Positions 2,511 to 44,824 of a stretch of 64,000 nt of DNA are shown here, piece after piece; position 1 is the first letter of the stretch; every line of letters begins with the position of its first letter. The position numbers and the translations under genes are program-made. Under the pieces are notes generated by a model. The model was not told the origin of the DNA and did no database searches. It saw nothing but the letters and a program-made list of their open reading frames with translations. The stretch comes from Thalia democratica (taxonomy: Eukaryota): the NCBI GenBank assembly GCA_965202585.1, contig OZ241833.1, forward strand, positions 34,286,001 to 34,350,000. Direction: 5' to 3'.

Positions 2511-2530
2511 AATGCAGAATAACTTACAAG

Positions 2531-5601: not shown

Positions 5602-5755
5602 CATTAGCTTAATTTATAATACATTTATGCACATGTTCGTACGAAGGCAGACTTGTAGGCGCCGTAACACCTGGGTTAAAGTGAAAAACAAATACTATGA
5701 AAGTAGTGAAAAGTATATGAGTGAGGAGCTGAAATGAGGAAAAATTGTTGCGCTG
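5602..5755. repeat. Triplicated BRE-containing element, copy A
   Basis: About 100 bp identical to copies B and C. Contains AGAC-TTGTA-GGCGCC (5649..5663) and CACCTG (5668..5673). Confidence 0.9.
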
Positions 5756-8700
5756 AAAAAAGAGAGTTGAGAAAGTTTGTTGCTTTAAAGCGAAAATTAT
5801 ACATTAGAAATTGTTTTACTGTTTTTTGAAATCATTGGAAATTTTTGGCAGGAATAATTTAAGTCTTTTAGCATTTTAGTTGTTGTACACTTTTAAAGAA
5901 AAAAAAGTAAGATTTTCGAATTTTCAACGAAGAGGTCATATAACATTTCGTGACAAAATCAAAAAGACTATTAGTAGTTATATAACTTTTTCACTTTTAA
6001 TTTTTGTAGTTTCAAATGTAATTTAAATTTTGATAACTATCTTGCAAAATCTTAATGAGAAGCTAAGAAATGAATTTTAATAACGGTAGCTTTTTATAAA
6101 GTTAAACATAAAAACTATTAAAGATGTTTACTTGACCACATTAAACGACATGTTATATAAATTAAAAAGAACGTGAATAAATATTTTTTTTCGAAATTTT
6201 TGATATGAGAAGAAAACGTGAAGCTAATAAAAGTACTACGTTCAATTTGTCCATATTTATACTTTTTCCTCAACGCTTTAATTTGTTACAAAGAAAGGAT
6301 TTGTTCCTAAAAAACAAAGCCAAATCTTACATAAAAAAAATATGTTTAGTATACTTTTTTGTAGGAACTAAAAGTCTATTTCTATTGCTTTGTAATAAAT
6401 TAAACCGAAAACTTTTGAAATTATAGACGAGCTGTAGTACCTTTATGCTAACCAAAATATCTAAAAAAGTACCTTATACCAGCAGTTTTTAGTGTTTAAA
6501 ATAAGAATATTTACAAAAGTAAGATGCCAAGAAAAACTGTAAGTATATATGAATTAAAAAACGCGTTTAATTTTAATGGTTTTACACTAGAAAGTTATTT
6601 TTGAAACTGTAAATATTAAAAAAAAAAACTTTTTATAAATGTAGTTTAAGTTTTTGGTTTGATTTGAAGTTTGTTTGATTATAATAGAGGTAATTATTGT
6701 TTATCAAATAGACTTTATTAAAATAAAACTCAGTTGTAATAACCTATATTTCTGTTAAGAATATCATAAGCATGCTTATTTAAAAAAATATATCTGTACA
6801 ACTAAAATAAAAAAGCTATCACCAACTGTTTACTATTTAAACTCAAAACAGCAATCAAAACGAAACATAGACGTTTATAACATGAGAAAAAAAACCACTT
6901 CTTGAATTGTGGACTAAAAACACAATTAAACTCTAAACTTTTATCAACACAAAAGTTTTAAATACTATTTAGTTATCTTGAAGCCTTTTATTCGTCGTCA
7001 GCGAAAATTAAATACTCAAAGTACACAAGCATTAAACTTTAATTATTTTAAACAGGTATGTTTTTTTACAGCTTAGAGACTTTTCTATCGGCTCATTTTA
7101 CTTCAGCCAGTAGCTTAATTTGTTTTGCTCGTTAACTAATTCGTGAAATGCTTTTTACTAAATTCCTACGATTTGTGTTCATTAAAACCCATGACTATAA
7201 ATTTATTTAAATTCAACTTATACGACCTGAGTTTTTGCCAAATATCAAGTAACTTGAAAGCTTAAATTTTACCGACTCTTAAAATATAAAATGGCATTAA
7301 CAGTTGTCCTTTTAATGTCCTTTTAATATATATATATATATTTATTTAAGTTTAACCAATTAAGAGAAATGCTGAGTTTTTAACAACGACTTCTCAATTT
7401 CTATCGACTCACTTTAGTTTAACTTATTAAATAAAAAAAAGTTATCATTTAATATAACTTAATATAAAACACAATACACAAACCCGTGAAAACTTTCTTA
7501 AAATTTAAATCTTATTAAAACAGCTTGCTAATCTTGCAGTTGTAAAATTTAAAGTAATTTATACATTAAGTATTCTTGTTTGTTATATGAGCTACAGAAA
7601 ACTAATTAAAACGTTCGCGGCGGTCAATAACCCGTTTAACTGTGATGTAAGCTCAACCGTTATTAACTTCTCAGAGGTTTGGAAATATGTCAGGTGCGGA
7701 ACAGAAATTAAACTTTACCTGACCTTCCGAGAACAGCTGCGGCCTAATTGTTATCTTTGCATTTCTACACAGCGTAATCTGCGAGCATTTTCGCTTTGAT
7801 TTTTCATGAAATCTCAATGTTTTTTGCACAAAGCCGTGGTGTAGGTTAATCTGACGACTTTATTGCGGGCGTCTTGCTGCCCGAGATACGAGATAAGCTT
7901 TATTAGCGCATTTTATTGTTTGGTTGCTTTTTGATTAACTGAGCGAGTAATAAACGCCAGATAACTTTATAAAGAAGTCGTTTTTAGTGTTTTCTGCTGT
8001 AAAATTTGTCTTGTGATAAGATAAACTTTATTCGAAGTTTTATTATAATTTTTTATACCAACACATAAAACTTTAAAAAGTCAATATTAAAGTTTTCTTT
8101 AGATAAAGTTGTGTAAATAATGAAAGTTTGCAAAATAAGATATTATCATTTGAATTTTAATAAACAATGAACTTCACCGCACGACCAACAACACATAGAA
8201 GTTTTTGGTGTCAATATTAAAGCATTATGTAGATAAACTCCTAGATTTAATAATATCTTTTGAGTTTTGTAACTTAAATTTGATAGAGCGCGGTAAATGA
8301 AAAAAAAAAGTTTTAATGAAGTTTGTTGTGCTGTTGTAAGTTAATTGTATTTTTTATTAGTAAAAAAGTTAACCATTTTACCTTTCAACAGCTTTTTTTT
8401 TGTAAACATTTTGCAGTAGATCGTTTCTATAACAGTCGTATAAAATAAACAATAAGTACTAGAAAACATTTTTTCCTAATAAATACCAAAATTTAAAAAC
8501 GGTTTGTGATACAGCTAATTATTTATTAAGTTACTTTTTATTTGACAATTAGTATTTATTTGATAATTTTATTTTTTGTAAGAATTGCATAAAAACATGC
8601 AGTACACTTGTTACGTCAGTATAAAGAGTCATCTCATGCGTACAAATAAATATTTTACCGGCAAACTAAAACTGAAAAAAAAAGAAAAGTTTTCATAAAA

Positions 8701-9434
8701 CCATAAAGTGTATTTTTGCATGAAACTTGTCAAAAGTGAGGGTGAACAGTGTAAAAGGAAAGGACACTTTTTACTGTATAAGAAAGTTCACAAATGACAT
8801 GTTTTATTGAGCTATTTTCACGGGTAGTGATAAATTGGACTACTTGTTGATTGAAATGATAAAGTAAGGAGTTTGAATACAAGTTTTAAACTTAAAGAAT
8901 TTACGATTAGTTTGATGCCAAAAGTTTAAAATTCTAAACACGATAACAAAATAAAAATTTGAATGGATATTTTGATAGCGAAATGTCGGGGTGTTTATAT
9001 AGTAATTCGTTTATAAAGTAATATATATATATATATATATAATTATCATGCGTTATTATTATTATCATGCGTTTTTAAAGCAATTACGGCTTAATTTATG
9101 TGTATTATGTACAAAAACTTTGTTTTGTTAACAAGCAACAAAAATTTGTACTTTATGATTTATGTTTATTATGACATTTAAACTTCATATGTATAGTTTT
9201 TACCGAATTATATAAACCTTTTAAAATATTTATAATTATTTCAAATGCTTACCTGCAAAGCATATCTTTTGTTTTTTCAGTTTAACAAAAAAATGTCCGA
9301 ATAACCAAAATTTTCAATCAAATAAAAAACCCTAAAACCCTTATTGTCAGTTTCATTAGCTTTGGTGGCTTTGCAAACTTTTCATCAAACTTAAGGTGGT
9401 CTCTTCTTTTAACAAAGGTCTAAGCTCGCACACA

Positions 9435-9585
9435 CATTAGCTTAATTTATAATACATTTATGCACATGTTCGTACGAAGGCAGACTTGTAGGCGCCGTAA
9501 CACCTGGGTTAAAGTGAAAAACAAATACTATGAAGGTAGTGAAAAATATTAGTGGGGAGCTGAAATGAGGAAATTTGTTGCGCTG
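9435..9585. repeat. Triplicated BRE-containing element, copy B
   Basis: Direct repeat of copy A. BRE at 9482..9496. Confidence 0.9.
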
Positions 9586-10659
9586 CTAAGAGCAAACGGT
9601 TGAAGCTTATTTGGTTTGGAAACAAACTTTCAATAAACACGGATCTGCTTTGTTTTATCAGCTGAAATTTTAAGGAACACGACAGTTTGACGATTTAATT
9701 TTCACTAGTTTTGTCTTATTAGTTTATTTTCAAATGTGTTTTTGTTTTCAATAGATTGAAAAAAAATTGTGGACGTTACATATTAACTGTTTATTGTTTT
9801 ATTTTTATAGCAAACCAAAATACTTATTTACTGAAATTGTTTGTATAAGAACATTTTTGAAACAGTCATACTGGTCTTTGTTTCTTGTTTTCATCATTGT
9901 TACTCCTTCGCATATGGTTTAATTATTAACAGTAAGCGATCTGGTTGTTATGAATGACAGTTCTTGTACTGCAAAGTTAAATGTCGTAAAGTACTACTTG
10001 GTACACTATAATTAGAATAGATCTGGAAATTAAATAAGGTGAATTAAAAAAAAAAAAGGTTGTTTGTTGCTACTTTGAAAATTAGCTCCTAAAAATAGAC
10101 TATAAAAAGTTTGAACACAAAAGATATAGTTTATTCTAACAGCCATAACAGCTGTGAGCTGTAATTTAAAACAGTTTTACTTATTAATTATTAATGAATA
10201 GGTATCAATAGTATGGTATTATTATAAATATTTTTGAACGCACTTGACGATTTTTAATAAAAAATAATTGTCCACTAATTAATCTATGCAACAGAAAATA
10301 TATTTTACGCAGATACATACCAAGAATATATAAGTTTTCAGTTTATTGTTATAAGTATTGATAGTCTCGTAAAAGCAAAAATTTTGGATTAAAATTTTTT
10401 GGACTGTATAAAAAGTTATAAAAAAACGTAAATTCAGAATTAGCAGTTTACTATACAAAATAAATTAAAAAACTTTAGTTTTTCTTATTTTACTATGATA
10501 AAAGTAATTTTTAAACGTTGACAACAAAAATCGCGAGGCTAAAAAAAGCAACAAAACAACAACAGCGTCGTTTCGAAATTAAATTTAGCAACAAGAAACC
10601 CAATATAGAACAAAATTTAACGCGAAATCGCTTTTTGATGGTCAAGGGCGAAACATCAG

Positions 10660-10750
10660 CTCGCGCAGGTGAGCTTCAGATCCGCGTATCTAATTGGCAG
10701 ACATCAGGGCGCCTCGGAACACCTGCGAGCTTGCAATTATGACGTCACAA
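10660..10750. promoter_or_regulatory. Putative enhancer: BRE, two E-boxes and a CRE
   Basis: CAGGTG at about 10666, AGAC-ATCAG-GGCGCC 10699..10713, CACCTG 10720..10725 and TGACGTCA 10740..10747, all inside a GC-rich island. Confidence 0.65.
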
Positions 10751-13685
10751 AGACCTGTATGCAGCTTCGTGCTCCTTGGAAAGTCGCATTCTGGATTAAA
10801 AAGAACTTTTCCAGGGCTCCCATCACGGTTTCAACGCGTCGCGCTAATGGAGATCGGATCTTTGTAATTACACGTTTCCCGCCTAAACACGTCATAGTAG
10901 CTGGGAGTAGCGTTTTTATTTTGTTGTTGATATGGGTCTTCAGCTGCGTACTAATGTGTGCAGAAGTTGGAACAGTATCTTAAAAACAAATTTAAAAGCT
11001 TTTTTATGTTAATAATTGAGAATACTTTGTGAATTAAGTACAATCATTATAAGTTTTTTTGTAGCGTTCGAAGTAAACAGTCTAGCAATTAGAAACTATT
11101 AACAAAAAGTAATGATTTGAAAAGTATAGCTGTAAATAAAAATCATAAAGATTTTTATTTTCAAGAATATACCAATAAACTTATAGATATGACTAATATA
11201 CAAAATACAGTCTACATTTACAATTTAACCTTCTTTTATGCCGTGAATATTACCTAAATTTTATAGGTTTCTTGTAGCATTTTCAAACAGTTCCACTATA
11301 AAAAACTACTTTGAAATGATAAAGTGAACTAAATTTAGACGTTTTTTGAAAAATAGCTAAACTTAAAATTCCGAAAAACTTACTTTTATTACAAATAAAA
11401 CATTTTCTGAAACGGAATCCAAATTAACAATAAAATATAGAAAAACAAAGCAAGTTATAAAAATGTTGTAAACAGTTATTTCAGTGTAATAAAAAGGTAA
11501 TTTATTTTAATTGTATAAAAGTTTTTATACAAAAGTTAGAGATAATAATTGCCTTAAAATTTTGCCAATAACATTCTTTTGTGTACAGCTCGAAAATCAA
11601 ATAATTTAAATTGCATTTTGAAGTATTTACTCAGATTTGCCATAAATTAAAAACTAACACCTGCGCTCTGGAGAAACTTATTAACAACTTGAAGGGTAAA
11701 AATAAATCACGATGCTCACCGCATTCACCATATTTTAAATATTTTGATGAGCGTGTAATTGCGCGTTTCAACAACACAGTTGATACACAACTTTCAAGGG
11801 AAAGAATATTCAATTTGCGGTGCAGAGTGTTGTCATATGTGCGAGTTGTGCTCTGGTGCAAGGTCTGCCTTCGTTCGAAATCAATCTAAATTAAAGCTGT
11901 CTCCCTGTTTGAAACAATTCTAATTTAAAAGTGTTTTTCTTCAGCTAAACCAAGCGCGCAGCTTTTTCTTCTCGGCCGCAATTCCGAATATCAAAGCAGC
12001 ACACTTCAGAAAAAACGAAAACTTGTAATTACAACGCACATGTGTTTCAATGCCCGCAAACAGCTGCGCATAGAAAAAAAAAACTGAGTTTGGAAAAGTT
12101 TTAAATAAAAAGGTTTAAAACTACATTATGACGTAACTGTGCAGGTGCTTTGAAACTGCTGCTGCTGTTGTGTCAGCTGCGAGATCACATAAGCAGCCAC
12201 TATCATTTGAAACAAATGGCAGTTAAGTATACAAAGTTTTGCATTTTTAATGTTTCAGCATTTTGTGCGAAGAGTAAAAAAAAGTGAATTTAAAGCTTGT
12301 AAGTTTAGAGATGTAATAATGGAAAAAAAATCTAGGGTGAGCTAAAATGATTGGGTGCAGCAAGCATCGTTCGTAAAACAAAAAAGTGATTAAGAAATTA
12401 TAGTAACATTTATGACAGTAATGGAAATAAAGTATACAAAGATCATTCTAAACGTTTCAGCGTTCAGAGACCTGTGAAAGTTTTAAGTGAAATTTAAGCT
12501 GATAAGTTTAGCAGGTTCAAAAATGAGTATTAGCCCAATTGGTCGGGTGTAACATATATCGTTCGTAAATTAAATGATAGATAAAAAATGTTAAATAAGT
12601 TCTAATCACATTTGATATATTATTTTACATTTTAGAGAATACGCTAAAACTAATGTTAATGGATTTCCGAAACCTTAAAGTTGTGTTTTAAAATGTGATT
12701 AGAATTACGACAATAAAACCCAATATTTAACATAAAGTCGTATTCCACTTTAAAGCATTTTTATGCTTATTTTTATTCTTATACTTTAAATAACAACGTT
12801 TTGTGTTAAATATTAAGTTTTATTGTTTTGATTTAACAATACTATTTTAATTCTGCTTGAAATTTATTTTAAAGTAAAATACTTATACGAAATATCTCTA
12901 GTTTAGTTAATTGAAACTATCAAGATGTGATTTATCAAGTTACTTTAGGTCTAAATTAAATGTAGGATTATTTGAAACTTTTATTTTGTGCTTTTTTTCA
13001 ACGTTGATATATTATAGCAGTTTTGGCAAAAAACTGTATTTAAAGCACTTGATAATTTTAGTAGTTGAAAATACTACATAAGAAGTACTTAATGGAACTA
13101 CCAAAAAGTAAAACACTTAGGCTCATCTATACAACTTTTTTATTATTTATTAGTTTAGGAATAGACACTACACATTCAAACTAGTACCTAAAATTTCACT
13201 AAAATAGCACAAAAAAAAGGTATTGCGCTATCATAATATTTTCGTACATACCTGTATGAATATAAAATTTTTATACAAGTCTATAACCATAGTAAGTCTT
13301 TAACAAAATTTATTTAATGTTTAAATGTAAGGTTGTAAGAATAGCTGATCTAGTTTCTGTTTAAATTTCAGTTTTCTTCAAATTATCGACTAGGAACAAA
13401 AAACTAAAAAAAAAACCTCATACGCGCCTATGTAAACATATTTACATGTTTTGTAAACGTTAACAAAAAAATAATGTTTTAAAGTTATAATGAAAAAATT
13501 TATTAAAATTTTAAGTATTTTCTTAAATACTTTTTACAAATTATTATAAACCAAACTTTGAAACAAAAAGTTTTATAATCTTTTATACACCTTAATCAAA
13601 CTTTTTCAAATTAAACGTTGAAGCGCAACAGCTAACTTAAATTTAAATCATTATGTAAAACGTTTTTAAATTTCTTAATGCTTTC

Positions 13686-13778
13686 TATTTAGACATTTAT
13701 AAACTTAATAATAAAAAAAAAGGAAAATTTTTTATTTAGACATTTATAAACTTAATAATAAAAAAAAAGGAAAATTTT
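13686..13778. repeat. 47-bp tandem duplication (x2)
   Basis: TATTTAGACATTTATAAACTTAATAATAAAAAAAAAGGAAAATTTT repeated. Confidence 0.85.
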
Positions 13779-14408
13779 CTAATACTATTTATTATTATTT
13801 TAGTTCTTTTTATGGTTATACCAAAAGGTAGAATAAAAAAAAATACTTTGCCTTTTAAAGTTAAATTTTTTCAGCGTATTTTGTCCTATGTTTTAAAAAT
13901 CGAATATTATTTTGGCTTTAAATGGTAGCTACTACTTAGCTTTAGTTATTATGATAAAGGTAAGTAAAGTTGCATCTCTTAGTTGAGTAAATTTGTAGCA
14001 ATCGTTTTAAACAACGAAATCCTGAGTTATTTTTCAATTCTATTTTAAACAAGTTTTCCGAGCAAGTCATCAAAAAGCTTAATTCGAAGATAAATTAAAA
14101 AAAAAAAATTCAGCTTCTTTTTAGTAAAATACTACAAAATATAAATTTTTATACTAACAAAATTTTATATTACATAAAAATAAAAGTTGTTTTTAACATA
14201 GTTTAATCACAACAAAAAGTTATGAAAACACACAAAAAAATCAACAAATAGAATTTTTTCTTCAGTTTTCAGCCCGCGCTAGCTTCCACTCGGCGAACAA
14301 CTTTCTTATTACGCTGTTTGTGACGTCATAGCTGCTGAAAAAACTCGTGGAAAGTTTAGCTGCTCCATCAGGCAAGTTTGTGAAAGTTGCAAAGTTCGTT
14401 TCAATTGT

Positions 14409-14660
14409 CTGAAAAATGAAAAATCATAAATGACATGTTTCATAACTAAATGCTTTTTTTGGTTTGTTGAAAAATACAAAGACTTCAACGATACAACTTT
14501 AACGTGTCTTTAATTTTAATTTTTTTTTTAAATGGTTTTAGTAACAATACAACAAATTTTAAGTTATAATTCAGTAAATGTATCAAAGGTTTAAATAATA
14601 TCATAAACTACTAATTGAACAATTTCAATACTGAAATAGCTGCAATAAAGTAATATTTAC
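14409..14660 (-). other. Predicted 3'-UTR intron of Id-2
   Basis: GAG|GTAAAT donor 19 nt after the stop and TTTTTCAG acceptor. The following exon (14408 to about 14262) aligns with Id-1 2830..2976. Confidence 0.75.
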
Positions 14661-14679
14661 CTCATAGTTATTTTGCATT

Positions 14680-14976
14680 TCACACTGGAGACGACACGAT
14701 GTTCTGATTACTGATCTTCTTCATTCCTGAAATCTGAGGTTTATTCAGCAACTCGCTCAAGTCCCGGATGTAGTAGATGGCCTGCTGAATTATTTCAAGC
14801 TGGTCCCCTTCATCGCCACACTTTGGCAGGATGTTTTGATCGCAGCATTTTGGCAGGATATTTTGCAGCTTCGAAAGCGTCTCCTTCACTTTCAAATCGT
14901 CGTTCTTTTTGATGGCCAAAGAGTTTTTGCTGATTTTGTTTTCGCTGGTTGATACTGCTTTGCTTGCTTTCACCAT
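14680..14976 (-). CDS. Id: Id/emc-like HLH protein (Id-2, 98 aa), inverted paralogue of Id-1
   Basis: 9 nucleotide differences from Id-1 over 297 nt by manual comparison. Same promoter and TATA-like box. Confidence 0.88.
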   Translation of the reverse strand: MVKASKAVSTSENKISKNSLAIKKNDDLKVKETLSKLQNILPKCCDQNILPKCGDEGDQLEIIQQAIYYIRDLSELLNKPQISGMKKISNQNIVSSPV

Positions 14977-15193
14977 TTTGAGTTTTTAGCTTGTGTGCTT
15001 GCTGCTACAGACTTTGAAGTAATAATTTTTTCTTGGCCCTGCTCCGCTTATATGCGCGACAAACCGCCTTTTTTACTTCCAAGCTCTCAGAGTTGTTTCT
15101 TTACATTATCCCACCCAATTACCACCCGCTATCTCGTATTTCATCTTTTTTAATTTTTTTTTCAATTTTCTCGAGGTTGCACGTGCATCGAGC

Positions 15194-15346
15194 AGACTTG
15201 AAGTCGCCAGCGCACCTGATTTGCAAGCAAACAATGAAGATTTTCAATGAAGATTTCTCCAGACTGGCTGGCGCCCCGCACCTGCAGCGAAAAGCGAAGA
15301 TTTTTTTTTGGTGAGAAAAATTTTCGCAGCCAGACTTGAAGTCGCC
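15194..15346 (-). promoter_or_regulatory. Triple BRE array (Id-2 promoter)
   Basis: Exact elements at 15194..15208, 15261..15275 and 15332..15346. GTGAGAA at 15311..15317. Confidence 0.8.
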
Positions 15347-16271
15347 AGTGCTCTAAACGCGAAAATGATTTGCTGCAGAAATGAAAATTAATTTTTGCAA
15401 CATTTTTTGCAGCTCCGATTGCCTTGTGCTGCAAAACTAAATATTATAAATATTTATTAATATTATTAATATTTAATTGTTAAAATATAATCAAAAATTT
15501 TATAAGAAAAAAAAGTATATCGGTTATTTTTAAAAACTTACTAGTTAACCCTAAAAAATCAATACAAAGAAAAACTTATTTTTGCAGCTCCTACACTGTT
15601 TTGTGCTGCAAAGTTGAAAGTTGATTTTGAAAACTTTTCTGATTTAAAAATCATTTGAAAGAGAAAAATTTGAGATTTTTTTCTAAATTTATAAGTTAAT
15701 CAATTTTTGAAAAAAAAACGTTTTGTAATCGAAATTTTCTTGCAAGTTAGACGTTTAAAACAAATTATAACTATTTTTAAGCTTGTTAGTCAACCCTTCG
15801 TATATTTCCGACATAAACTAAAATTTCTGGTTCTAAAATTTTTATCTCGACTAAAGTTAGTTTTTATAAGACTTATGTAACTTATAGACTTGAAAACACT
15901 AAACCAGTTGTCAGATATATTTAAAAAACGTTCAACTAAAAAATGTTACATCAACTTTTAACAATCCATTATTAGCTTTGAGCTTTAACTTTTTATTTTT
16001 CTGTATTAAATATACATAAAATTAAATATACAAAATTTTACTTTTAAAGCAGTAATTATAGGTTGAGCTAATATAATTTTTGTTAAAATGTTTGTTTAAG
16101 CACAATGGTTAAAAATATTTTTTTTTATGTTCTAAGTAGTTTTAGAATATTTATAGAAAACTATGTATTTTGATTAAAAAATAATTTAATAAACAGCTAA
16201 ATTTTAGTTTTTTTGTACTTTCAAATACTTGCTAGCTTAAACAAATGTGTTTCATAAGTCACGATTAATTT

Positions 16272-16313
16272 ACTTTATACTAGTAAACTTGTAAGAGTTT
16301 ACTAGTATAAAGT
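16272..16313. repeat. Perfect 18-bp inverted repeat with a 6-nt loop
   Basis: ACTTTATACTAGTAAACT-TGTAAG-AGTTTACTAGTATAAAGT. Confidence 0.85.
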
Positions 16314-17522: not shown

Positions 17523-17681
17523 TTCTCACAACGTCGCCCAGATGGAAAGAGTCGCCATGGCAACGTTCTTCCCACACGTTTCCATGGCAACCGACACGAC
17601 ATGAAAGGGGCCGGACCAGATGCGAGGTGACCACGCGACCCAGCCCTGGCAACCCTGGCGACAACTGCTTACCATGGCAAC
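17523..17681. promoter_or_regulatory. RFX X-box cluster with two Su(H)-type sites
   Basis: GTCGCCATGGCAAC 17551..17564, GTTTCCATGGCAAC 17578..17591, CTTACCATGGCAAC 17668..17681. TTCTCACA at 17523 and TTCCCACA at 17569. Confidence 0.6.
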
Positions 17682-24413: not shown

Positions 24414-24633
24414 TGGCGACTTCAAGTCTGGCTGCGAAAATTTTTCTCACCAAAAAAAATCTTCGCTTTTCGCTGCAGGTGCGGGGCGCCAGCCAGTCTG
24501 GAGAAACCTTCATTGAAAATCTTCATTGTTTGTTTGCAAATCAGGTGCGCTGGCGACTTCAAGTCTGCACTTGCACGTGCAACCTCGAGAAAATTGAAAA
24601 AGAGATGAAGTAAGAGATAGCGGGTGGTAATTG
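24414..24633 (+). promoter_or_regulatory. Orphan copy of the Id-2 promoter with three BREs and no downstream ORF
   Basis: About 220 bp closely matching the reverse complement of 15113..15348. BREs at 24415..24429, 24485..24499 and 24552..24566. Confidence 0.85.
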
Positions 24634-30110: not shown

Positions 30111-30125
30111 AGACTTTACGGCGCC
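30111..30125 (-). promoter_or_regulatory. BRE 1.3 kb downstream of the divergent HLH gene
   Basis: AGAC-TTTAC-GGCGCC, an exact match. Confidence 0.6.
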
Positions 30126-31442
30126 TGCGAAGACAAATTAAAAGTTAATATGCTTTTACGTTATATAAAAAAATTGTGTCAACGTCCAGTGATAAACCAT
30201 GCTCAAACGAAAATTTACGATAATAATTTTTAGCTTTATCTATATATTTATTATTTACAAATTTTAAATGTTTTGAATTTATAATTTGACTGTTGAAAGA
30301 TACAAAAACTTTTCAAAGATTATTTCTGTAAAGTTTAAGCTTTGCTATTTTTGTTAAATTTAGTTTTAACACCAACATAAGGTAAATATATTAACATGAA
30401 ATAAAACATTAGAAATAAAGTAGAGATTTATAATTATATTTTTTCAAAAGTATTTAAATACATACTTTGAAAATTTGTTATAAACTTGTAAAAAAATTAT
30501 AAAGACTAGTTTAGTTTTTAAGCATCTTACTTATTTTTAAATATGTAAAAGTACCATGTATTTGTTTGCTATTATGCTTTTATAGTTAAGAAAACTTGCT
30601 TTTAAAACTTGTTAAGTTCAAATTTTTGGCTTTGTTAGATGTAATTTTGTATATAATCGTAAAATTTTGTTCGATAAAAGTTAAAACCAGCAAAAGTTAG
30701 TGATACATTTAAGTTATAATCTGTAAATCAAAAAGTTTGTGAACTTTTAAATCTTTAAAACTTATTTCTTTAAGTATTTTACTAACGAACTACAAATATT
30801 CATCATCATTCATCTTATAACACTTGAAAGTTATGCTAAAAAAATTTAGTACGTTTCTTTAAAAAATATAACTAATCTATCAAAATATATTTATACATGA
30901 ATAAAATTTGAACAAAACGTTTTATTTGAAAACAGTAGATAAGCAATAAAAAGTTTTGAGTTTTTTGTAAAACAATTTGCACAGTGTAAGGAAGCAAATC
31001 TATAAAAAAGTTATAAATAATTTTCAAAATAAAAAAATTCTCACTAAAATGCAGTTAATTCTGAAAACATTTTTAAATAGTGATTATTACTTTTTCGAAA
31101 CTACTAGAAGCTAAAAAAGTTGAACTTTTTCACAACGTAGTAAAATTTCTTTCAACTTGAAACTGGCTTACAGCTTTACAAGTACCGTAAAAAGAAGACT
31201 ACAAAAGCAGAACTAAACTATAAAAAAAAACTTTAAGCCTTTTCATTTTCAGTTCTTAAACTTTAATTTCACGTTAACATGATGAGTTTCTAAAACTAAA
31301 TAACATATTGAAGTTTAAGAGTTTAAAAAACAATTCAATTCGGTTTTTTCAAATTTGAATTTCACGATAAAACTCGAGTATAAAAAAAAAAACTAAACGC
31401 ATGTAAAAAGTTTTTGGGCAGTGACGTCATAACACCGTAGCT

Positions 31443-31742
31443 TCACCTCCGTCCGACCGTCCGCCCCTCGTCGTCGATGTTGACGAAGCAGTGTGACGTC
31501 ACAGTCCTCTTGCTCTCGTCACTGTTTCTTATGACGTCGTGCAGCAGCTTTATGTAGGCGGTGACGTCGCGCAAAACGGTGACGCAATCGCGCTCCGAAG
31601 CGACGTCACGACTTCTGGCGGGGACCAGCTCCCTGAGGTCGTCGAGCAAGTCCATCACCGCTCTGACGTCATTTTGTGAGTCTTTCGTGACGTCACGGTT
31701 GGTTTCGGACAAAATGCTGACGTCACTAGTTTGGATGCTCAT
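31443..31742 (-). CDS. Divergent basic-less HLH protein, Id/emc-like (99 aa from the first ATG)
   Basis: VMDLLDDLRELVP...CVTVLRDVTAYIKLLH fits the HLH helix 1/helix 2 pattern and there is no basic region. GC-rich ORF in AT-rich DNA. The track ORF starts at a TTG (31775); the first ATG is at 31742. Confidence 0.75.
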   Translation of the reverse strand: MSIQTSDVSILSETNRDVTKDSQNDVRAVMDLLDDLRELVPARSRDVASERDCVTVLRDVTAYIKLLHDVIRNSDESKRTVTSHCFVNIDDEGRTVGRR

Positions 31743-31767
31743 TGAATTTTTTGTTAAATTAATTAAC

Positions 31768-31831
31768 CTGAACAATCGGTAAATTTTTGTTTAAAAGTTA
31801 GTTACTTGTTGTTGTTTATATTTGTATTTAC
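31768..31831 (-). other. Predicted 64-bp 5'-UTR intron of the divergent HLH gene
   Basis: On the minus strand: AG|GTAAAT donor, TAACTAAC branch-like motif, and TTGTTCAG acceptor 25 nt before the ATG. Confidence 0.55.
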
Positions 31832-32890
31832 CTAAACAGATACAGATTATCTAGTATTATCTATTTGTTTGTTTTCTTATCTAAAAGTGATTTCGTTTAA
31901 TAGTTATGTAAATTAAAAATGTTGCATACTAGTATAGTAATAATAACCATGCATTTATGAAACATCTATTGTACTTTATTATTTACAATAATCTAAAAAA
32001 CTGAAAAAATCATAAATGCTTAATGTTTGCTCTAAAACAAACGTTTATTAAAGGGCTTCCTTTTATATACATATATAAGTTTATTCAAAGCAAAGTTAAG
32101 CAAACTTAATGTTTTTTACTATAAATAAAATGAAACATTTTTTAAATATTATTAAACGTATAAAAAAGAACTATTAAAGATCAAATTGATTTATTTAAGC
32201 TTCAATAAACCTTTACTTAAAAAATTTTTTAAGTCAAAATTGTGTACTAAATTTCTTTAAACCTTTAGTATAAAAATTATAAAGTAAAACATAAACTTTT
32301 ACGCTTATACTTAAAAAAAAAACAAAAAGCTTTAATAACTGAAATAACTCTCAAGTAACTCTAAAAGCTTTTTATACAACATAACAGTTTTAAGAAGACG
32401 CTCTCTAAAAATAATTTTATAAATAACAAAAACTTCCATTTTAGAGTAATGATTCTGTTTTCTTACAACTTGACCTACCATTGCGCCATTAAGTATTTAA
32501 TACATTGTATGGTAAACATGTTTTCTTTGTAACGAAACTAAAAATGCTCATTTAGCTGTCACGTAAAAATCTTAATTTTTGTCAGGAATGATTTAATTAC
32601 TTGCAAATTGTCTGTAATAAAAGTCAACAAAATCTAAACAAAACTGTATTTGTTTTTATAGCTTTTATAGTTTTCTTCATTAAAAAAATGTATTTTTTTT
32701 TGTTTATAAATCACTAACTTAAAAAGTTGAAATAAAATTCAAAGTTAAAAAATAAAAAAAACATTATTTTATCTTAATGTGTCGTGCTCCTCTCGAAGCG
32801 TCCAAACCCGACTGGTTCCGTTGGTAACAAAATTAAATTTTATTTGAAAGTTTTTTTTTTTATTTGAATGTTTCTTTCCTTCTGATTGCT

Positions 32891-32918
32891 CAGGTGCGAG
32901 CCAGGCGCCTCGGTGTCT
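32891..32918 (+). promoter_or_regulatory. E-box plus BRE 1.2 kb upstream of the divergent HLH gene
   Basis: CAGGTG-CGAGCCA-GGCGCC-TCGGT-GTCTG. Confidence 0.7.
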
Positions 32919-35900
32919 GGCAAACAAGAAAATTTCTTCCTCTCTCGTTTTTCTCGACAAACTTTTTCATTCTCTCGTTTTTCGTTGGTGAATTTACGGC
33001 GTGAAAATTCGTCCAAGCACGTGCTAGCAGTCTCTCGCTCGTTTTTGTCGTTGGTGGGCGAGAAAGTATGATTGAGTAAACATTTTTCGCATGTGGTCTT
33101 AATAAATAAAAAAGAATTTGCTTTGGTACTTTAAGTTCTTAAAAAAAACAGTTTTTGCTGAATGGTTTTATCATATAAGTAGAAAACTACGGGGTTTCTT
33201 TGGATTTTTAAATCTCAAAAGTCAAGTATTTGGTTTGAATTTTCATATAAGTTTTTCGTTGTTAAAAATTCTAGAAAAAATTAAATTTTTAATAGCAAGC
33301 TTAAAATACTTTACTAACAAAAGTGTGTTTTTAAAGTACTGAAACTTACTAAAAAACCCAGAAAGATAAATATTTTTAGTTTTTTAGTTTAAGACTGTTA
33401 AAAACTGTAAACTCACTGCCAATGTCAAGTTTAATACTTTATAATTAGCGGTAACTTTAAATAAGAAAAGTATAAACTTATGGACAATTGTAATTTAAAA
33501 ACGTAATAATGTTCCTTATCTGGAAAAAGCAATTATTTCTGCGCGCAGTACAAAGTGGCTCAAGTACACGGAAAATAACATACTTTTCGCTAATTATCTC
33601 CAAATCAGATGTTAATAAATTTTTAATTGGCGAATTATAATGTGATTTCGGCTAAACTTGTTTTGTATGCTGTCACCGACTTGTTAAGAAAAAAAAATAA
33701 AAATAATGCACAACTAAAAATGTGATTATGTAAAAGATATTACGTTAACAGTTATAATACTATTTTCGGCAAATAGTTAACTTTTAATATTAAAATAAAT
33801 TAAGATTTTAAGTATAACTTTGTTTTAGTTTGTAAAGAATACTAAAGGTAAAAAAGAATATATTACTAAATGTTTAAAATTTGAACCGTTTAAAAGTCAT
33901 CTTTAAATCTTTAAAAAGTTTTAATGAAAACTTTGTTGGTTCATTTTGAAAAAAAAAAAAGATTAAGGTTAATTCTAAAAGTATTCGTTATATTTATAAA
34001 TATTCAAAATCAGTATTTCATTATAAAGTAAAACTAGTTTAAGGCCTAATACAACACAATTTTTGTAAACTGGTTGTAAATCATCTTAAATACCACAAAA
34101 AATTCAATAAAAATGTTTTAAAGTATTTTAAAGTCTTTTAAGTATGTTTATTGGTTGAACCACTTTAAAATATTGTATAAATATTAAAGCTTAAATTTTG
34201 AAATAAGTTAAAGTTTACTTTAAATTCATTGAACTGAACGACTATAAAAGCTGTTAGACGAAGTTTTCAAACATTTTTGAACAAAATAGGTCTATTTTAA
34301 TAAATAAAATAATGAATGTAAGAAAAACAGAGTAAAAAACTATTTTAATTAAATAAACAGTATAAAAATAGACATATATTTCATTTGAGTACGTTTTCTT
34401 GTTACTGAAAGTTTTTATAGTAACATACTTGTTTATAACTCAAAAATATATTTTAAAAATTTATTTTCCTAGAGGTTTTAAACTATTTTAAAAGTTTTCA
34501 AAAAAATATGTTTAATAATTTGAACTACGATAAAAATTTAAACTTTTAGTTACTTAAATGTTTTTATTATATACTTATGATTAAACAACTAATCTCTAAT
34601 CTATGAAAAATTCTAAAATTAGCTAAAAAAATATTGCTCATTTAAACATAAATACAGTTTTTCAATCTGCATGTGCTTACTTTGTTTTAAAATCTTTTAT
34701 TCCTTTCAGCAAAGCAAATTTTTACTTTTAAAACATTTAAAGTTACAGCTAACACTATCATAGTTAAAGTCTTTGAAGCACAAAAAAAAAACTTTAAAAA
34801 TAGGTTCTTAAACCACTGTAAAATTAATCAAGTTGTTTTAAATAAATAACAAACCAACAAAGCAGGACTATTTGAACTCTAGTTCTAAACATCTTTTACA
34901 ACTTTTCTACTTTTAAACTACAGTCAATACTAATGTAATTAAATTTAACCTCATAAGACCTACCAGCAAAAAAATATAAATGGTAACCTTACTTTTTGAA
35001 GTATATGGGATGGTAGTCCTAATGTTAGAAAAATATAGTATCTTATAGTATCTACTGTCCATATTTGAATGATATATAAAAAAAAACTTAAACAAACTAT
35101 ACAACAAGTTGTTTTCTAGTTAATTGTTTCAAAACTTTAAAATACATCTAGCTAATTAAACAAAACGTACATATATCCCAATATTCTAGGTATATCAACA
35201 AAACTCATTGTTAAAGTCTCTTTATAACTGCAAATTTTTAAACAAATATCTGCCGAAAAATAGTTAAAAACATAGTTTTATACTACTTTCAACCGTCTAG
35301 TTACAACCATCTTTATCTAAATTAAATGATCTTAAAACAAGGAAAAACTTAAACAGAATAACAACTTAACTTCTAATTTAACATTCTGAAGTTAAGATAA
35401 AATGTTTAAGCTAGTTTAAAGTTTAGCAGCCATACCCAATAGATAATACTGAACTTATCAACAAAAATCCCCAAATAATTGCAAACTTTATCTGATGAAT
35501 CTCTGTCAACACATGGTTACAGCCTCACATGACTATGAAGTCAACAAAAAATCACAAATACCAATGTTAAAAATGCTAAGTTGGTCATTTAGCAATAAAA
35601 AAACACATTTTGTTCCTTTATGAAAACCCTATGCGACTGCACTTATTCCTGACGAATCTCTGTCAACACACGTTCGCAACGCGCACACGCATGAATGACA
35701 GTTGCTCGCTCGACGCGGCGCGCTCGACGGCGTTATGACGTAACAGTAGGCAACCAGTTGCCAGATAAACTTGAACATCAGCTGTCACTCCACCTTAATC
35801 ATCGACCGATATTTCTTGTTTTCGCTACATTCTGTCGATTTTAATTGATTTAATTTTTTTCAATTGTTATCTATATTTAACTGTAGTGCTGTAAGAAAAA

Positions 35901-38900: not shown

Positions 38901-41900
38901 CAGTAGGGCTAAGAGTGATATTAACAGTAAAAAGTAAAAATCAATAGACTTTCATAAATTTTTTAATAAGGCTTATATTGAATAGAAAGCTACACTTACT
39001 TATATCAAGTTGCACAAACTAATGCTAAAGTATGAAAGTTAGTTTAAAATGTTGTGCTTTAAACTCTAATGTTTATATACTTAACTTGATACATTAAATG
39101 TATTGCTATATACCCCTAATCAAAACCAAAACTAAAAAAAATAAGAGCTAACAAACAAAATCTAATGTCCTATCAAAAACTCATAGTACGTGCAACACTC
39201 ATAACTCTTCGACAAAACGCGTGTTACAAACACCAGGACCTTAGCACTAATAAAAAATAATTTCATGTTTTACAAGTCGATATCCGCACATTACTCACGC
39301 AACGCGTTTGCTAACCAGCTTATGTGAACCGCCTATTATCAGAAAGCTGCTGCCTGATACAACGCATCGCGTTGGTCATATGCCCTATCGATTCATTCAC
39401 AATTCCATTCTGCTCAGCATAAAGTATATGCCAGAAAAACAGAGTGCTTTCCAGTGAAAAGTAAAAGTCGCGCGAAAAACACATGCACATATGTGTATGG
39501 CAAATGTGTGCTGTTGAAACAACTTTGTTTTTGGAATTACACCAAGCATATTGCGTTCTGGTGTACATTTAGAGTTTTAGGTCGGTTCGAATGCTGTCGC
39601 TCTGCTTTAATGTGCCGTATGTAGGTTGTGTGTATTGGTGCTAGTGTGTGTTGTATGTAGGGCTCACAACTGCCATTCACATGATTGGTGTCATTACATG
39701 CAGTCTGCATAAGTTTTTTACTTTAACTATCAATGAAAAGCTGTGCTCGTATTTTCAATGCAAACGTTGTAAAATAATTTTCGTCTTTGAAATATGCTCA
39801 ATAAGTTTAAACATCAGTTGTATGAGTAGTATCTAAGTTTTATTAAGGACGTACAATCTAAATATTTAACAATGACTTTTTAACTAATTTTTTATTCTAT
39901 TGTAACATTCTTAACAACATATTAGTCGTAGTTTGCATTAGTATCGATAAAAACTTATTTTTACAATAAAAAAAAAAATAAGTATAGCTGTAAACAGCTT
40001 ACGTAAAAATAAATGTAAAAGTTCAAAAATAAGAGAGACTGTATTAAGCAACAAATTCATAACAGCAAAGCTGTTAAAAAAAAGTTTTAGGAAAGCCAAA
40101 ATATAAAAAATCTACGAACCCAGTTCAACAATGTTTATAAATAAATACAACTAAACGATTTTTTGTAACTAATATGAAAATAAAAACTTATACTTTCCTT
40201 CGTTTCTTTTTAATTTATATTAATATATAAACAAAAAACGACAAAATAATTATCGGTAAATAACTTATAACAGAGCCAGGCAAGAATATTTGATATTCTT
40301 AATTTAAATGTTTTAAAATTTTTCAGATTTATTGAATGGCATTTAACTTTCTAATGCAATAAGGTTTTATACACAAATCAATTGTCATATATCATCTTGA
40401 TGCTTTATTTAGTTGTACGTTGTCAAAGTGTTCTCTGTGTGGCTGTAGGTTTATACAGTGGCTAATACTTTAATTAAGTTTTGTGGTATGAAGGTAAAAC
40501 TAAAGCCGTTTTAAAATTAAAAATGAAAAGATTAGAAGGTGTTTTATAAAAAAAGGTGATTTGGAACAACAAAAAAACACTTTCAAACTACAGAGTATCA
40601 GCAAAGATTAAAACTTAAAAGTAAAACATGATGTTTTCAGTTAAAAACCTAAGTTTTTCTTACTGTCGCTTTAGATAAGTTTTAAAGTACTTGATGTTTG
40701 TTGTTCATGTTTATGTAGACTTTTATGTAAGAGCTGCCATACGTTGTACCCCCAACTGCTTGGCCAAACGAGCGTTCGACACGCCAATCACGCTTTTCGA
40801 AGAAAACCTCACAGTTCGCAAAAGACCATTTCTGAAAACTACAGTGGTCACGCTGACCTTTTTTGTTCACGAGACTAAAATTTGTGTTTCTAAACTCATG
40901 TTTTTAAATAGTACAAAAAAAAAAAAAACGTACAGAAAAACGACACTCATAAAGTTTCCGATCCTAGTTTTTTTAAGTCTCGAAACTCATAGAAAACATT
41001 GTTGTCAAACTAAATAAAATAAAAAAACTAGAACACTGACAAAAACAAACGTCTAAAGACACTTTAAACAATTTAACAAAATAATTTAGTATTGGTAAAT
41101 AGTACAGATAATGTTTAACTTTAAACTAACATTTTGAATTGAATTATAACAACAACTTTATGTAAATTAAAAATTATTAAATGACAACATTAGTTGTATA
41201 TTAAAATAAAATTATACAATTTTAAAGATATTTTATATGTAAAATACACATAAAACTACTAGTAGTTTTATAAATAAATACTAATTAGCTATAAAATAAG
41301 ATACGATCTTTACTATTTAATGTTCACTTGAAAAGCACTTTTTTCAATATTCAAGCTTAAACATGATACAAAACCATTTGGTTTATTTATGTATTAAGTA
41401 CGTACTAAAAATTCAAAATATAGCTTCAATTGTTATGTAGAAAATACGTGTAAAGCAAAACCGTAGTCATTATAAATTGCGTGTTTATAAACTATATTTT
41501 TTTACAACGACTTTGCAACAAACACTTGATACTTTTGCTTGTTGCACAGTTTATTTTTCCTTATATGATTTGAATGTTCTTAAAAACTTCCTTTTTGGTG
41601 AAAACTTTTTCTTGTGGTTGCAAACTTTTAGAAAGCACCAAACTGCTTGATCGTTTCCACTTTCTAGCTAATTAGGAAGCGTTTCTTCCTTTATGAGACA
41701 AGTTTAGCAAATGTTTAAAGCATTTCTGACAAACAAACAACAGTTAATTGAAAACCTTCTGAGTTAACTGCTATCTAGCTTACTTCTATAAAATCATATG
41801 TTGTCTTGTACGCACGGAACATAAAACAGTATTAGTTGTATAATTGGTTATAGTAAATTAGACAATCTATGAAATTTTATTATTCAACGTTTTTTTTTTT

Positions 41901-42300
41901 TGAAACATACCCACCTCTAGTACATTTCACCCCGTTTAAACATGATTTGTAAGCATATATTAATTTTTATTAAGTACAAATTTAAGGTGTCAAATGTTTG
42001 TTGAAAATTTGTTTAAACAGATTTAAGGAAACATAACAGTAATCATATACTGCTTGCTTATAACCTACAGTTTTTCACATAATTTTTGCAACAGATTTAA
42101 ACTATTTTTACTTACTTCAATAGTATTTTACTTTATTGATTTGCATGTCTTTTTGGTAGGCTTTTTGCTGTGACTGTGACTTAAACAAAATAGCGCTTGG
42201 TACTCTAAGAAAATAAACTAATATCTACATTCTAGTTAGAAACAAGCTTCTTCCTTACAAAAAGTGCCTAAAACAAATGTTTTAATCACTTCTGACGAAC

Positions 42301-42776
42301 AAACTAAACGCAGTTAATTAAAAACGTTTGTGTACACAACTGCTGTATTGTTTTAATAGCGGAAAACGCGTCGCGCAGCTGACAAAACACAAATGTTATG
42401 CATGCGGTTTTTCGATAAAACGCCAAAATGTTCCTAATAAACACGTGTTCGTGTACCAACTCTCAGGTAAGCGAGTTAATTGGCAATGTTGACATTCGCA
42501 CATTTTGATCTTTGTACTTTTGCAGCTGCTCGCAACAACTCCTGTGGTGGCATCTGTTTGTTTTACAAGCAAGATAACAAATTAAATTTATTTTTGTGTT
42601 TTATAAAGTGCTTTTAAATAATCGTTGATAAGATCAAATTTATTTCCACACTCGTTTGAAGTTGACAGTTAAAAAATGTAAGGTACTCTATTATTTAACA
42701 AGGAAGCATGTTATATAAAGATTAACTTTACATTAGTCGACGTTTAATATACTTTAATTTGCTTGGTTTACATGCA
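42301..42776. repeat. ~475-bp inverted repeat, arm 1 (partner 56731..57204)
   Basis: Long colinear reverse-complement match (roughly 90% by eye), rich in E-boxes and GATA motifs. Confidence 0.9.
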
Positions 42777-44696
42777 AGATAAAAACGGGTTTAACTTATT
42801 TTCACATATAGTCAAAGTGTGTTAAATTATCATCAGTATGATGAAAACAATTTTCTAAATTTTATTCAAATACACCTTTAGAAATGTAAGATGTTTAAAT
42901 TTAATAAAAATATATGTAATACAGCGATTAACTTCAATTTCGCAATCTTTTAATCTTATTTACATCGTTTGAAACAGTTCTTTTTGAAACTAAATTACTT
43001 TATCTAGAACAACATGCGTTTAAAGGTGCATTATGACAGGAACATTCATAAATGTTTGTTCTTAAAAAAATTAACTAGTTTTTAGAACAAGCAAACATTG
43101 CACGCTATGTTTAATTTTTAGCTTATCTTGAATGAATTTTTAAATTTATTTTAACTTTGTATTCTCTTGAGCAGCTTTTAGAAAGTCTAATATTATTTCT
43201 CTAATGTACGACTATTGACAGTAACACTTTGAAAAAATATTTTTAAATTGCTTTTGACCATTTGATTTTAATGGTCCTGCTATAGTGCTTTTACAAAAAA
43301 ACAGAAACTGTTTTCATTTTACTTAATGAAAATTAATAAAACTTGAACAAGACTCAATTAAACATTTTAGTCTGTTCTGCTGTCTGAATAAACTGTTTTT
43401 ATACCGTTAAATCATAACAAAGAACTCATTTTATTATAAAATCAATGGTTCCTTTAGTTAAAGTTTTACAACTCAAAAACAAGTTTGTTCTTTGAAAGAA
43501 GCTACTGACTGATATACTCTAAAAACAAGTTTGTAACAAGACTTTGACTGTAGTTGTAAAATTTTTGTCAAGTCTAATTATAATATTTTATGCAAATTGA
43601 ACTTTAAAAATGTTAATAACAAGAATTGTATTGTAGTGTTAAAATTATAATTTTTGATATTAAACATTTTTCTGTCAGTGTTAGTTTAAAAATAAATGAT
43701 TGTTGTTCATTGAAACGTTTCAGATGCTGTAAAACAAGTAATGTACTATTATAAAGTCCTATTATAAATGAATAAAAGTTCAAATTTTATGAAAACAAAA
43801 AGTGTAAAATCAAATTGAATTGTGGTTTCTACAAAATGTTTCAAACTGAAGATTTTTTTGAAGTTTTTGAAAACTTAGGAAAAATTGATAAATAATTCTT
43901 TTCATTACTGCTTAATTTCAATTTAAAAATGTACAAACAAAGTGTTGTTTTTAATTGTTTTACATCTTTATCATTAGAAAGTCAGATAACTTAATTTTAG
44001 GTTTAAACTTTTGTAATTTATAGAAACTTTTACCGGCAGTTGTAACATTTTTTTTTAAGTAAAACAATATTAGTGATAAAATCATTAATAACAAGTAAAC
44101 AAACACAATGTTCTTATTTTATATCCTTTTTCATAATCTTTTTATTGTTAAGAGTAAATATTTGAACTTTGTATTTTTTTTTGTTTATTTGTACGCTTTT
44201 TTTATCATAAAAGTTAACTTAGATAAAGCTTTTTTAGTTTCACTGTTTCGAATCTAAACTGTTATAATTTTTTTTTATTTTAAACATTTATGTGTTTTAA
44301 TTAACTTAAATGTCATATAAGCAGGGTAAACCAGTTCAGCGAGTTCTAATAAGTAAACTTCTTTTAATAGTCTACACTAAAAACAATAAAAAAATTCACT
44401 TAGCCCAGTAATATCAAAAAATTGAAGATATTAAAATTATAAAAAATAGAAACAAACTTTTATAACTCAGACTTAAACTAATGATAATTTTTTGGTGCAA
44501 AATATAACATTATTTTTATCGGAAAAGTTTATAAAATGTAAAACAATCTACATTTATCATACTTAGTAAAAGTTAACTAGTCTAATAGTTTTACAGTCCG
44601 TATTTTTGATACTTAATTCAACGTAAATTTTATACATTTTTTACAAAAAGCAACTTTTACTGCGCAAAAACTTGCTCCTACTCTGAGCTTTTCCCT

Positions 44697-44824
44697 CCCC
44701 ACTCATATTTTTCACTACCTTCATAGTATTTGTTTTTCACTTTAACCCAGGTGTTACGGCGCCTACAAGTCTGCCTTCGTACGAACATGTGCATAAATGT
44801 ATTATAAATTAAGCTAATGTGTGT
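44697..44824. repeat. Triplicated BRE-containing element, copy C (inverted)
   Basis: Reverse complement of copies A and B. BRE at 44758..44772. Confidence 0.9.

Follow-up and report, generated by a model that had tools for sequence, protein, structure and literature searches.

A cluster of Id-like genes in Thalia democratica contains three copies of an element of about 165-180 bp, which is probably a locus-specific cis-regulatory module of that cluster, most likely one that responds to BMP signalling. The window, the whole stretch of DNA analysed here, spans 64,000 nucleotides. The first-pass annotation had placed copies of the element at 5602 and 9435 on the forward strand and at 44824 on the reverse strand, and all three are located at these coordinates. 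Each copy contains an ID-type BMP response element (BRE) coupled to an E-box.

5602-5766, forward strand: copy A of the element, identical core at 5602-5701
5648-5673, forward strand: composite CAGAC-N5-GGCGCC-N4-CACCTG (ID-type BRE plus E-box) of copy A
9430-9595, forward strand: copy B of the element, identical core at 9435-9534
9481-9506, forward strand: composite CAGAC-N5-GGCGCC-N4-CACCTG of copy B
44651-44829, reverse strand: copy C of the element, identical core at 44725-44824
44748-44773, reverse strand: composite CAGAC-N5-GGCGCC-N4-CACCTG of copy C

The longest run common to the three copies, with copy C read as its reverse complement, measures exactly 100 bp and has a GC content of 36%, in agreement with the roughly 100 identical base pairs reported previously. 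The invariant stretch amounts to 92 bp once two alleles from a haplotig join the alignment of A, B and C. The element itself is longer than the approximately 100 bp originally assigned to it: the copies have in common a tail with the sequence TTGCGC(T/A)G, and the tail of copy C carries a 9-bp insertion. Repeat comparison recovers 115 nt at 98% identity for both A/B and A/C, and 130 nt at 99% identity for B/C. The flanks, described earlier as unrelated, are unalignable among the three copies with the exception of a weak similarity between A and B, which extends to 5845/9671 (81% over 245). The left arm of the element is AT-rich and contains TAAT-type sites and a second E-box, CACATG; the right arm contains AACAAAT.

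The core carries a perfect ID-type BRE, GGCGCC-TACAA-GTCTG, with a CACCTG E-box 4 bp further. The palindromic GC box GGCGCC is present in all three copies and in both alleles, and GTCTG is found exactly 5 bp from it in the active orientation (GGCGCC-N5-GTCTG, not GGCGCC-N5-CAGAC); the element also fits the brk-type consensus GRCGNC(N5)GTCTG. The arrangement GGCGCC-N5-GTCTG confers BMP sensitivity on reporters, and both orientation and spacing matter (PMC11907993); in a sea anemone, pSMAD1/5 ChIP peaks show enrichment for the BRE (PMC10849676). The window contains 17 matches to GRCGNC-N5-GTCT against 0.04 expected. Across the genome there are 37 perfect ID-type BREs, compared with 5 matches to the reversed control, and 9 of the 37 fall in the window. 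Composites of a BRE and an E-box with a spacer of 2-7 nt occur 12 times in the window against 0 expected, with constant order and orientation, and the pattern CAGAC-N5-GNCGYC-N4-CACCTG is found nine times in the whole genome, every time at the Id locus or its haplotig. When the window is searched with a model of the element, the next-best matches after the copies themselves are the Id promoters, and the composite of the element agrees with those of the promoters in order, spacing and four of the five linker bases. Promoter composites are retained in marine-metagenome contigs encoding Id-like proteins of 84% and 97% identity, the 97% identical gene being located on a Tara Oceans contig; exact 26-mers of the element core gave zero matches in two metagenome scans. 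The coupling of BRE-N4-CACCTG, private to the locus and retained in related marine sequence, suggests a specific partnership of Smads with an E-box factor, possibly representing an Id-E-protein feedback loop.

The other genes and sites of the cluster are as follows.

1944-2990, forward strand: Id-1-like gene, CDS 2214-2510, promoter BRE/E-box composite at 1968-1993, TATA at ~2139
10698-10725, forward strand: BRE/E-box composite whose spacer is 6 nt, within an island of raised GC content that lies between copy B and Id-2
14211-15346, reverse strand: Id-2-like gene, CDS 14680-14976
24414-24633, forward strand: orphan fragment of an Id-type promoter, containing three BREs (two within BRE/E-box composites) and followed by no coding sequence
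30111-32919, reverse strand: divergent HLH gene, CDS 31443-31775
48127-48988, reverse strand: Id-3-like gene, CDS 48156-48389

The promoter of the Id-2-like gene contains composites at 15193-15218 and 15260-15284 and a BRE at 15332-15346; that of the Id-3-like gene contains composites at 48591-48616 and 48658-48682 and BREs at 48763-48777 and 48974-48988. The divergent HLH gene has a composite upstream, at 32891-32919, and a BRE downstream, at 30111-30125. The neighbouring Id-like proteins match the Pfam HLH family with E-values of 0.006-0.04, below the cut-off and over profile positions 16-53 only, and a profile of these proteins finds ID-1, ID-2 and ID-3 as its top matches in PDB (E-values 0.0013-0.008). 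Matches to the Smad MH1 domain above the cut-off are present at no fewer than four loci of the genome. The Id-1-like gene has an intron in its 3'UTR (2531-2830), followed by exon 2 with AATAAA at 2977. The element was considered as a second exon or 3'UTR of an Id gene and rejected, as exon 2 of Id-1 ends at ~2990, 2.6 kb before copy A.

Copies A and C occupy equivalent positions relative to their genes. Copy A begins 3.09 kb past the stop codon of Id-1 and copy C 3.33 kb past that of Id-3, each in the orientation of its gene; copy B ends 5.08 kb from the stop codon of Id-2 and has the opposite orientation, a point absent from the first-pass annotation. The distances of 3.1, ~5 and 3.3 kb given by the first-pass annotation are thus correct when measured from the stop codons, as is the matching relative orientation of A and C. 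The accompanying notion of one copy per canonical Id gene is an over-reading. The interval between the convergent genes Id-1 and Id-2 holds two copies, A and B, an extra BRE/E-box site (10698) is located between copy B and Id-2, and B does not fit a simple duplication unit of gene plus element because its orientation is wrong.

We searched the 802 Mb genome for further copies. BLAST with the element finds five places, three in the window and two on C1635, a 6-kb unplaced contig, and a genome-wide search with three sub-patterns at up to three mismatches returns the same five; copies below ~80% identity may escape detection in these searches. C1635 is collinear with positions 5344-10487 at 92% ungapped identity and is a haplotig, the other haplotype of the A-B region. 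Three DNA runs confirm the heterozygosity and the haplotig status of C1635, and at the listed sites the DNA run of a second organism contains only the alternative letters. Assembly duplication is ruled out, as A and B are present in the same order on both haplotypes. Outside the element, the 700-bp contexts of A and C match nothing else in the genome. Inspection of the element ends for terminal inverted repeats, target-site duplications and LTR features found none, and an LTR pair formed by A and B is ruled out by the lack of TG..CA ends, a primer-binding site, a polypurine tract and coding capacity between the two. A genome-wide BLAST, proposed earlier for the core as the means of telling an enhancer from a mobile element, yields three copies and two alleles, all at the Id locus or its haplotig. 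With unique flanks and this copy number in 802 Mb, the mobile-element branch of the original interpretation is refuted at the sensitivity reached, and the confinement of the element to the Id cluster argues that the copies most likely represent a regulatory module that was duplicated and then kept identical.

The element is conserved between its copies to a greater degree than the Id coding sequences. Identity between copies reaches 98-100%; the coding sequences of Id-1 and Id-2 are 97% identical, with just five synonymous codon differences, and the promoters of Id-2 and Id-3 have 149 nt in common at 99%. The intron of Id-1 and Id-2 retains 54-65% identity, which amounts to saturation. Alignment columns 118 and 140 of the element display both A and G states across paralogs and alleles. 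The near-identity of element and exons, the saturated intron and the two common variable sites together point to gene conversion plus constraint. The gene-conversion signal comprises 2-3 informative sites in total, with the core grouping B with C and the tail grouping A with B. Allelic identity of the element is 97-100%, which places it in the top ~11% of 100-bp windows, a level of conservation equalled by other blocks between A and B. Full invariance over 100 bp, AT-rich positions included, exceeds the usual needs of transcription factors and could reflect recent copying rather than constraint. The motif, the composite, the near-identity islands and the polymorphism common to paralogs all fit the earlier proposal of a BRE enhancer under concerted evolution, but the enhancer role itself is putative.

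Several other explanations of the element can be weighed against these observations. It might be a BMP-responsive TATA-type promoter rather than a distal enhancer, which we consider unlikely. Read on the strand that runs opposite to Id-1 and Id-3, the element presents an E-box, the BRE, ~30 bp and then TATAAAT, and the product would be an antisense or non-coding RNA directed towards the Id 3' end; since conservation ends ~12 bp past the TATA, transcripts would begin in the unique flank. The TATAAAT is indeed present at that distance from the BRE on the reverse strand of the invariant core, A and C are equal in orientation and distance to their own Id genes, and the orphan fragment at 24414-24633 shows that pieces of Id promoters duplicate within the cluster. 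The real Id promoters, however, have their TATA ~150 bp from the BRE and therefore a different architecture; TATA-like strings are frequent at 27% GC, and a transcript from copy B would head for A, not for an Id gene. A lower probability still is given to a transcribed element conserved for its product, be it an exon, a small-ORF gene encoding a basic peptide of 25-38 aa or an unstructured non-coding RNA. One ATG-initiated frame is open over the entire core, and conservation starts at an AG (CATTAG) and weakens past AAG/GTAGTG, resembling a splice acceptor and donor. The end of the ORF nevertheless differs between copies (25, 30, 36 and 38 aa). In copy A the frame is shifted by a 2-bp indel, and the allele of this copy is interrupted by a stop codon, with the GT and the downstream ATG both lost. 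By our own estimate, an open frame is expected in about one third of random 90-nt stretches of such composition. Polypyrimidine tracts are poor, conservation continues for 60 nt beyond the putative donor, and there are no differences of the synonymous type, unlike in the real Id exons. A structured RNA was rejected: no stable fold was found in the element on either strand (z +0.9 to +1.7), the Rfam search gave zero matches, and a search for a tRNA or tRNA-derived head was empty.

The lowest probability falls to a mobile element of low copy number, or to a recently copied patch, ~170 bp long, at three sites, without selected function. Such a patch could stem from templated repair, or from an LTR-like pair A/B with a solo C, and its BRE would be present by chance or as cargo. 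Complete identity over 100 bp, sharp edges, unrelated flanks and the arrangement of A and B as direct repeats 3.8 kb apart are what recent copying would produce. This reading is at odds with there being just three genomic copies, which sit inside 40 kb of a single gene cluster, and with the lack, at the sensitivity reached, of any diverged relative in the 802 Mb genome. None of the terminal structures sought by inspection is present, and the longest ORF between A and B does not exceed 73 aa. The matching distance and orientation of A and C to their own genes, a tail topology that mirrors the gene tree and the likeness of the composite to those of the Id promoters also speak for a module tied to the locus.

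As a cis-regulatory module, the element would bind a phospho-Smad1/5-Smad4 complex at the GGCGCC and GTCTG boxes, 5 bp apart, and a factor of the E-protein, Snail or ZEB class at CACCTG, 4 bp further, with the AT-rich left arm and the right arm contributing tissue context. It would act from afar on Id promoters possessing one or two composites of the identical type as well as plain BREs. The putative module may be activating, like the vertebrate Id BREs, or silencing, like the Drosophila brk-type element. The three copies would have arisen as segmental duplications assembled the cluster; the similarity of tails and flanks, ((A,B),C), agrees with ((Id-1,Id-2),Id-3). Interlocus gene conversion and purifying selection would then hold the copies base-for-base identical, while the surrounding DNA diverged to saturation.

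Id genes are classic direct targets of BMP, and the Id BRE is the standard BMP reporter. The BMP response elements of vertebrate ID genes were reportedly described by Korchynskyi and ten Dijke in 2002. The BREs of vertebrate ID1, ID2 and ID3 are ID-type composites GGCGCC-N5-GTCTG (Morikawa et al. 2011 PMC3203580; PMC11907993). The element has the same consensus and spacer length as these BREs, with its two Smad boxes oriented to each other in the same way; it also lies near putatively HLH-only Id-like genes and is present in several copies per locus. The vertebrate elements are located in upstream promoters or enhancers, whereas the element described here lies 3-5 kb downstream of the genes. 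Its BRE also differs in being embedded in a 100-bp block identical at three paralogous positions and in having a CACCTG E-box at a fixed distance of 4 bp. In Drosophila, the brinker-type silencer GRCGNC(N5)GTCTG is said to recruit Mad, Medea and Schnurri, as reported by Pyrowolakis and colleagues in 2004. The element matches this consensus exactly, down to the 5-nt spacer and the final G of GTCTG, but the same sequence silences in the fly and activates in vertebrates, and the host here is neither.

Interlocus gene conversion leads to concerted evolution in tandem and inverted families, such as the globin and hsp70 gene pairs. The Id-like cluster resembles these cases in its islands of near-identity (exons, promoters and element) within saturated paralogous DNA and, at two to three sites, probably in variants common to paralogs. 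It differs from them in that the best-homogenised tract is apparently non-coding, lies 3-5 kb from the genes and surpasses the coding exons in likeness between paralogs. We tentatively propose, as a possibility with the odds against it, that concerted evolution has as its unit a BMP-responsive enhancer or silencer acting at a distance, with conversion keeping a 100-bp module identical at three positions up to 39 kb apart.

The AT-rich genome of this marine animal contains a few dozen perfect ID-type BREs, one quarter of them in one Id-like cluster, and these sites narrow the candidate direct targets of BMP in a non-model animal to a very short list. A non-coding module that is base-perfect across paralogs would be a clean case for gene conversion of regulatory DNA. 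If the module is indeed a unit of concerted evolution, the Id paralogs would stay tied to one common BMP input while the surroundings of the module drift.

The three copies A, B and C of the non-coding element are present in the window as the first-pass annotation had described them, and the longest run common to all three, with 36% GC, is exactly 100 bp, in agreement with the core of about 100 identical bp it had claimed:

5602-5701, forward strand: identical core of copy A
9435-9534, forward strand: identical core of copy B
44725-44824, reverse strand: identical core of copy C

A repeat search of the window, whose composition is 22-33% GC without N, pairs A with B over 115 nt (98%), B with C over 130 nt (99%) and A with C over 115 nt (98%). 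In a five-way alignment of A, B, C and the two alleles carried by C1635, a 6-kb contig of the same assembly, the element spans approximately 165-180 bp, from CATTAG to a common TTGCGC(T/A)G tail, and includes 92 consecutive columns without variation among the five sequences. The flanks, described as unrelated, show no similarity among the contexts of A, B and C in a sensitive self-BLAST of the window, except for a weak continuation of A-B similarity to 5845/9671 (81% over 245 bp).

The genome-wide BLAST of the core proposed in the annotation, run with copy B as the query against the 802-Mb assembly (1833 contigs; the window is G000:C9:34286001-34350000), returns five places, namely the three window copies and two sites on C1635. 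Pattern searches of the whole genome with up to 3 mismatches in the left arm (41 nt), centre (39 nt) and right arm (29 nt) recover these five places again, with no matches for the controls, and for the 700-bp context of A or of C the genome contains no second match. C1635 is collinear with window positions 5344-10487 (92% ungapped identity, 80% counting indels); in organism A, the DNA contigs of two runs contain both the window and the C1635 letters, and in organism B, those of one run contain only the alternative letters at the sites compared. The collinearity and the observed letters identify C1635 as the other haplotype and not a paralog. The genome holds three copies of the element, all within 40 kb, and the suggestion of a high-copy mobile element is therefore refuted at the sensitivity reached. 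On inspection, the element ends lack inverted repeats, target-site duplications and LTR hallmarks, and no ORF exceeding 73 aa was found between A and B.

Repeats of other kinds occur in the window. A very short, very high-copy repeat at approximately 8158-8193 reaches a summed contig depth of about 57,000, where the level elsewhere is about 100-300, and contigs break at both of its edges in their hundreds. An inverted repeat pair (42255-43094 and 56395-57250; 80% over 860 bp, cores 93-97%) brackets the Id-3 region at a distance and has a tandem structure inside its first arm (42552-42971).

The centre of the element reads CAGAC-TTGTA-GGCGCC-GTAA-CACCTG, which on the other strand contains GGCGCC-N5-GTCTG, an ID-type BMP response element (BRE). 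The ID-type composite confers BMP sensitivity in reporter assays and requires the 5-bp spacer and the GTCTG orientation (PMC11907993); sea anemone pSMAD1/5 ChIP peaks are enriched for the BRE (PMC10849676). The window contains 17 matches to GRCGNC-N5-GTCT, against 0.04 expected. Perfect GGCGCC-N5-GTCTG occurs 37 times genome-wide, against 5 for the reversed control, with nine occurrences in the window and two on haplotig C1635, and all nine matches to CAGAC-N5-GNCGYC-N4-CACCTG in 802 Mb lie at the Id locus or its haplotig. Composites of the BRE and the CACCTG E-box with a 2-7 nt spacer number 12 in the window, where none is expected, and share the same order and orientation. The window pattern search places them as follows:

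copies A, B and C: composite
promoters of Id-1, Id-2 and Id-3, the Id-like HLH genes of the window: composite
10698-10725: composite with a 6-nt spacer, in a GC-richer island (10640-10960)
24414-24633: orphan Id-type promoter fragment; two of its three BREs form BRE/E-box composites
32891-32919: composite upstream of a divergent HLH gene

The orphan fragment matches the Id-2 and Id-3 promoters at 93-97% identity, and no Id coding sequence follows it. The island at 10640-10960, 4 kb downstream of Id-2, also holds a TGACGTCA palindrome and may be a further regulatory element. When the window is searched with a sequence model of the element, the next-best matches after the copies are the Id promoters (E 0.003-0.1); the similarity, confined to the composite with four of five linker bases, hints at common descent and is too short for proof.

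The neighbouring genes encode small HLH proteins. Their Pfam HLH match is below threshold and covers only profile positions 16-53, leaving out the basic region, and a search of the PDB with the family profile ranks ID-1, ID-2 and ID-3 first (E 0.0013-0.008), above all bHLH proteins. At least four MH1 (Smad) loci are present in the genome. Two marine-metagenome contigs in ENA (L031 and L032; one from Tara Oceans, PRJEB4352) encode Id-like proteins 84% and 97% identical, and their genes keep the same promoter BRE/E-box composites, linker included; open-ocean metagenomes therefore include DNA of this animal or of close relatives.

Identity between Id-1 and Id-2 varies by segment:

coding sequence: 97% (codon differences: five synonymous, three non-synonymous)
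promoter: 87-91%
exon 2: 86-90%
intron: 54-65%, a divergence taken to be saturated

Together with 149 nt common to the Id-2 and Id-3 promoters at 99%, these values indicate patchwise evolution of the Id cluster, a pattern that interlocus gene conversion acting on functional segments would be expected to leave. No identity patch of the cluster is more extreme than the element: its copies are 98-100% alike, against 87-91% for the coding sequences of Id-1 and Id-2 compared with Id-3. In the tail, A groups with B and C stands apart by a 9-bp insertion and several substitutions, in agreement with the gene tree. B matches C at both variable sites of the core, its other allele having the A-type letters, and one element site displays the same A/G polymorphism at both A and B; gene conversion would predict such a pattern, here based on two or three sites. 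The element cores of the two haplotypes agree at 97-100%, where 100-column windows have a median identity of 89%, and since approximately 11% of windows match this identity, it supports constraint and does not prove it. Haplotype-identical runs of 198 bp (7631-7828) and of 159 and 106 bp (9376-9680) lie in a region otherwise about 92% identical; the run at 7631-7828 is unrelated to the element and contains a CAGGTG E-box and no BRE.

A second hotspot accounts for 15 of the 37 perfect ID-type BREs genome-wide, at G000:C2:65.05-65.85 Mb (L033-L039) and G000:C1:18.31-18.50 Mb (L040-L042). The three BRE contexts on contig C1 are 100% identical. Four BREs on contig C2 belong to another repeated module of approximately 120 bp, in which the BRE is invariant and the surroundings are 85-90% alike. 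This module displays the ordinary footprint, an invariant BRE in diverged surroundings, and makes the total invariance of the A/B/C element stand out.

Other functions were considered for the conserved sequence. Against a structured RNA, neither strand folds stably (z +0.9 to +1.7), Rfam gives no hit within the element up to E 10, and no tRNA is present. The Id-1 gene comprises a TATA box, a 297-nt coding sequence, an intron right behind the stop codon and an exon 2 with AATAAA; copy A is ruled out as its 3' exon because exon 2 stops near 2990, 2.6 kb before A. A small ORF of 25-38 aa across the core carries little weight as a conserved product: its end differs in every copy, a 2-bp indel changes its frame in A, and A's allele carries a truncated ORF. 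The element could instead act as a promoter that responds to BMP and drives an antisense or non-coding transcript, as the reverse strand of the core presents the E-box, the BRE and then TATAAAT, with conservation ending shortly beyond.

Judged from sequence, the best-supported reading makes the element a putative regulatory module, responsive to BMP and subject to concerted evolution. The proposed allocation of one copy to each canonical Id gene holds only loosely: A and C agree in distance and orientation, and B, which may be a local duplicate of A, runs in the opposite orientation to Id-2. The element belongs to a known kind, the BREs of Id genes, among which it is unusual in its 3' position, its private BRE-N4-E-box grammar and its base-perfect identity across paralogs.
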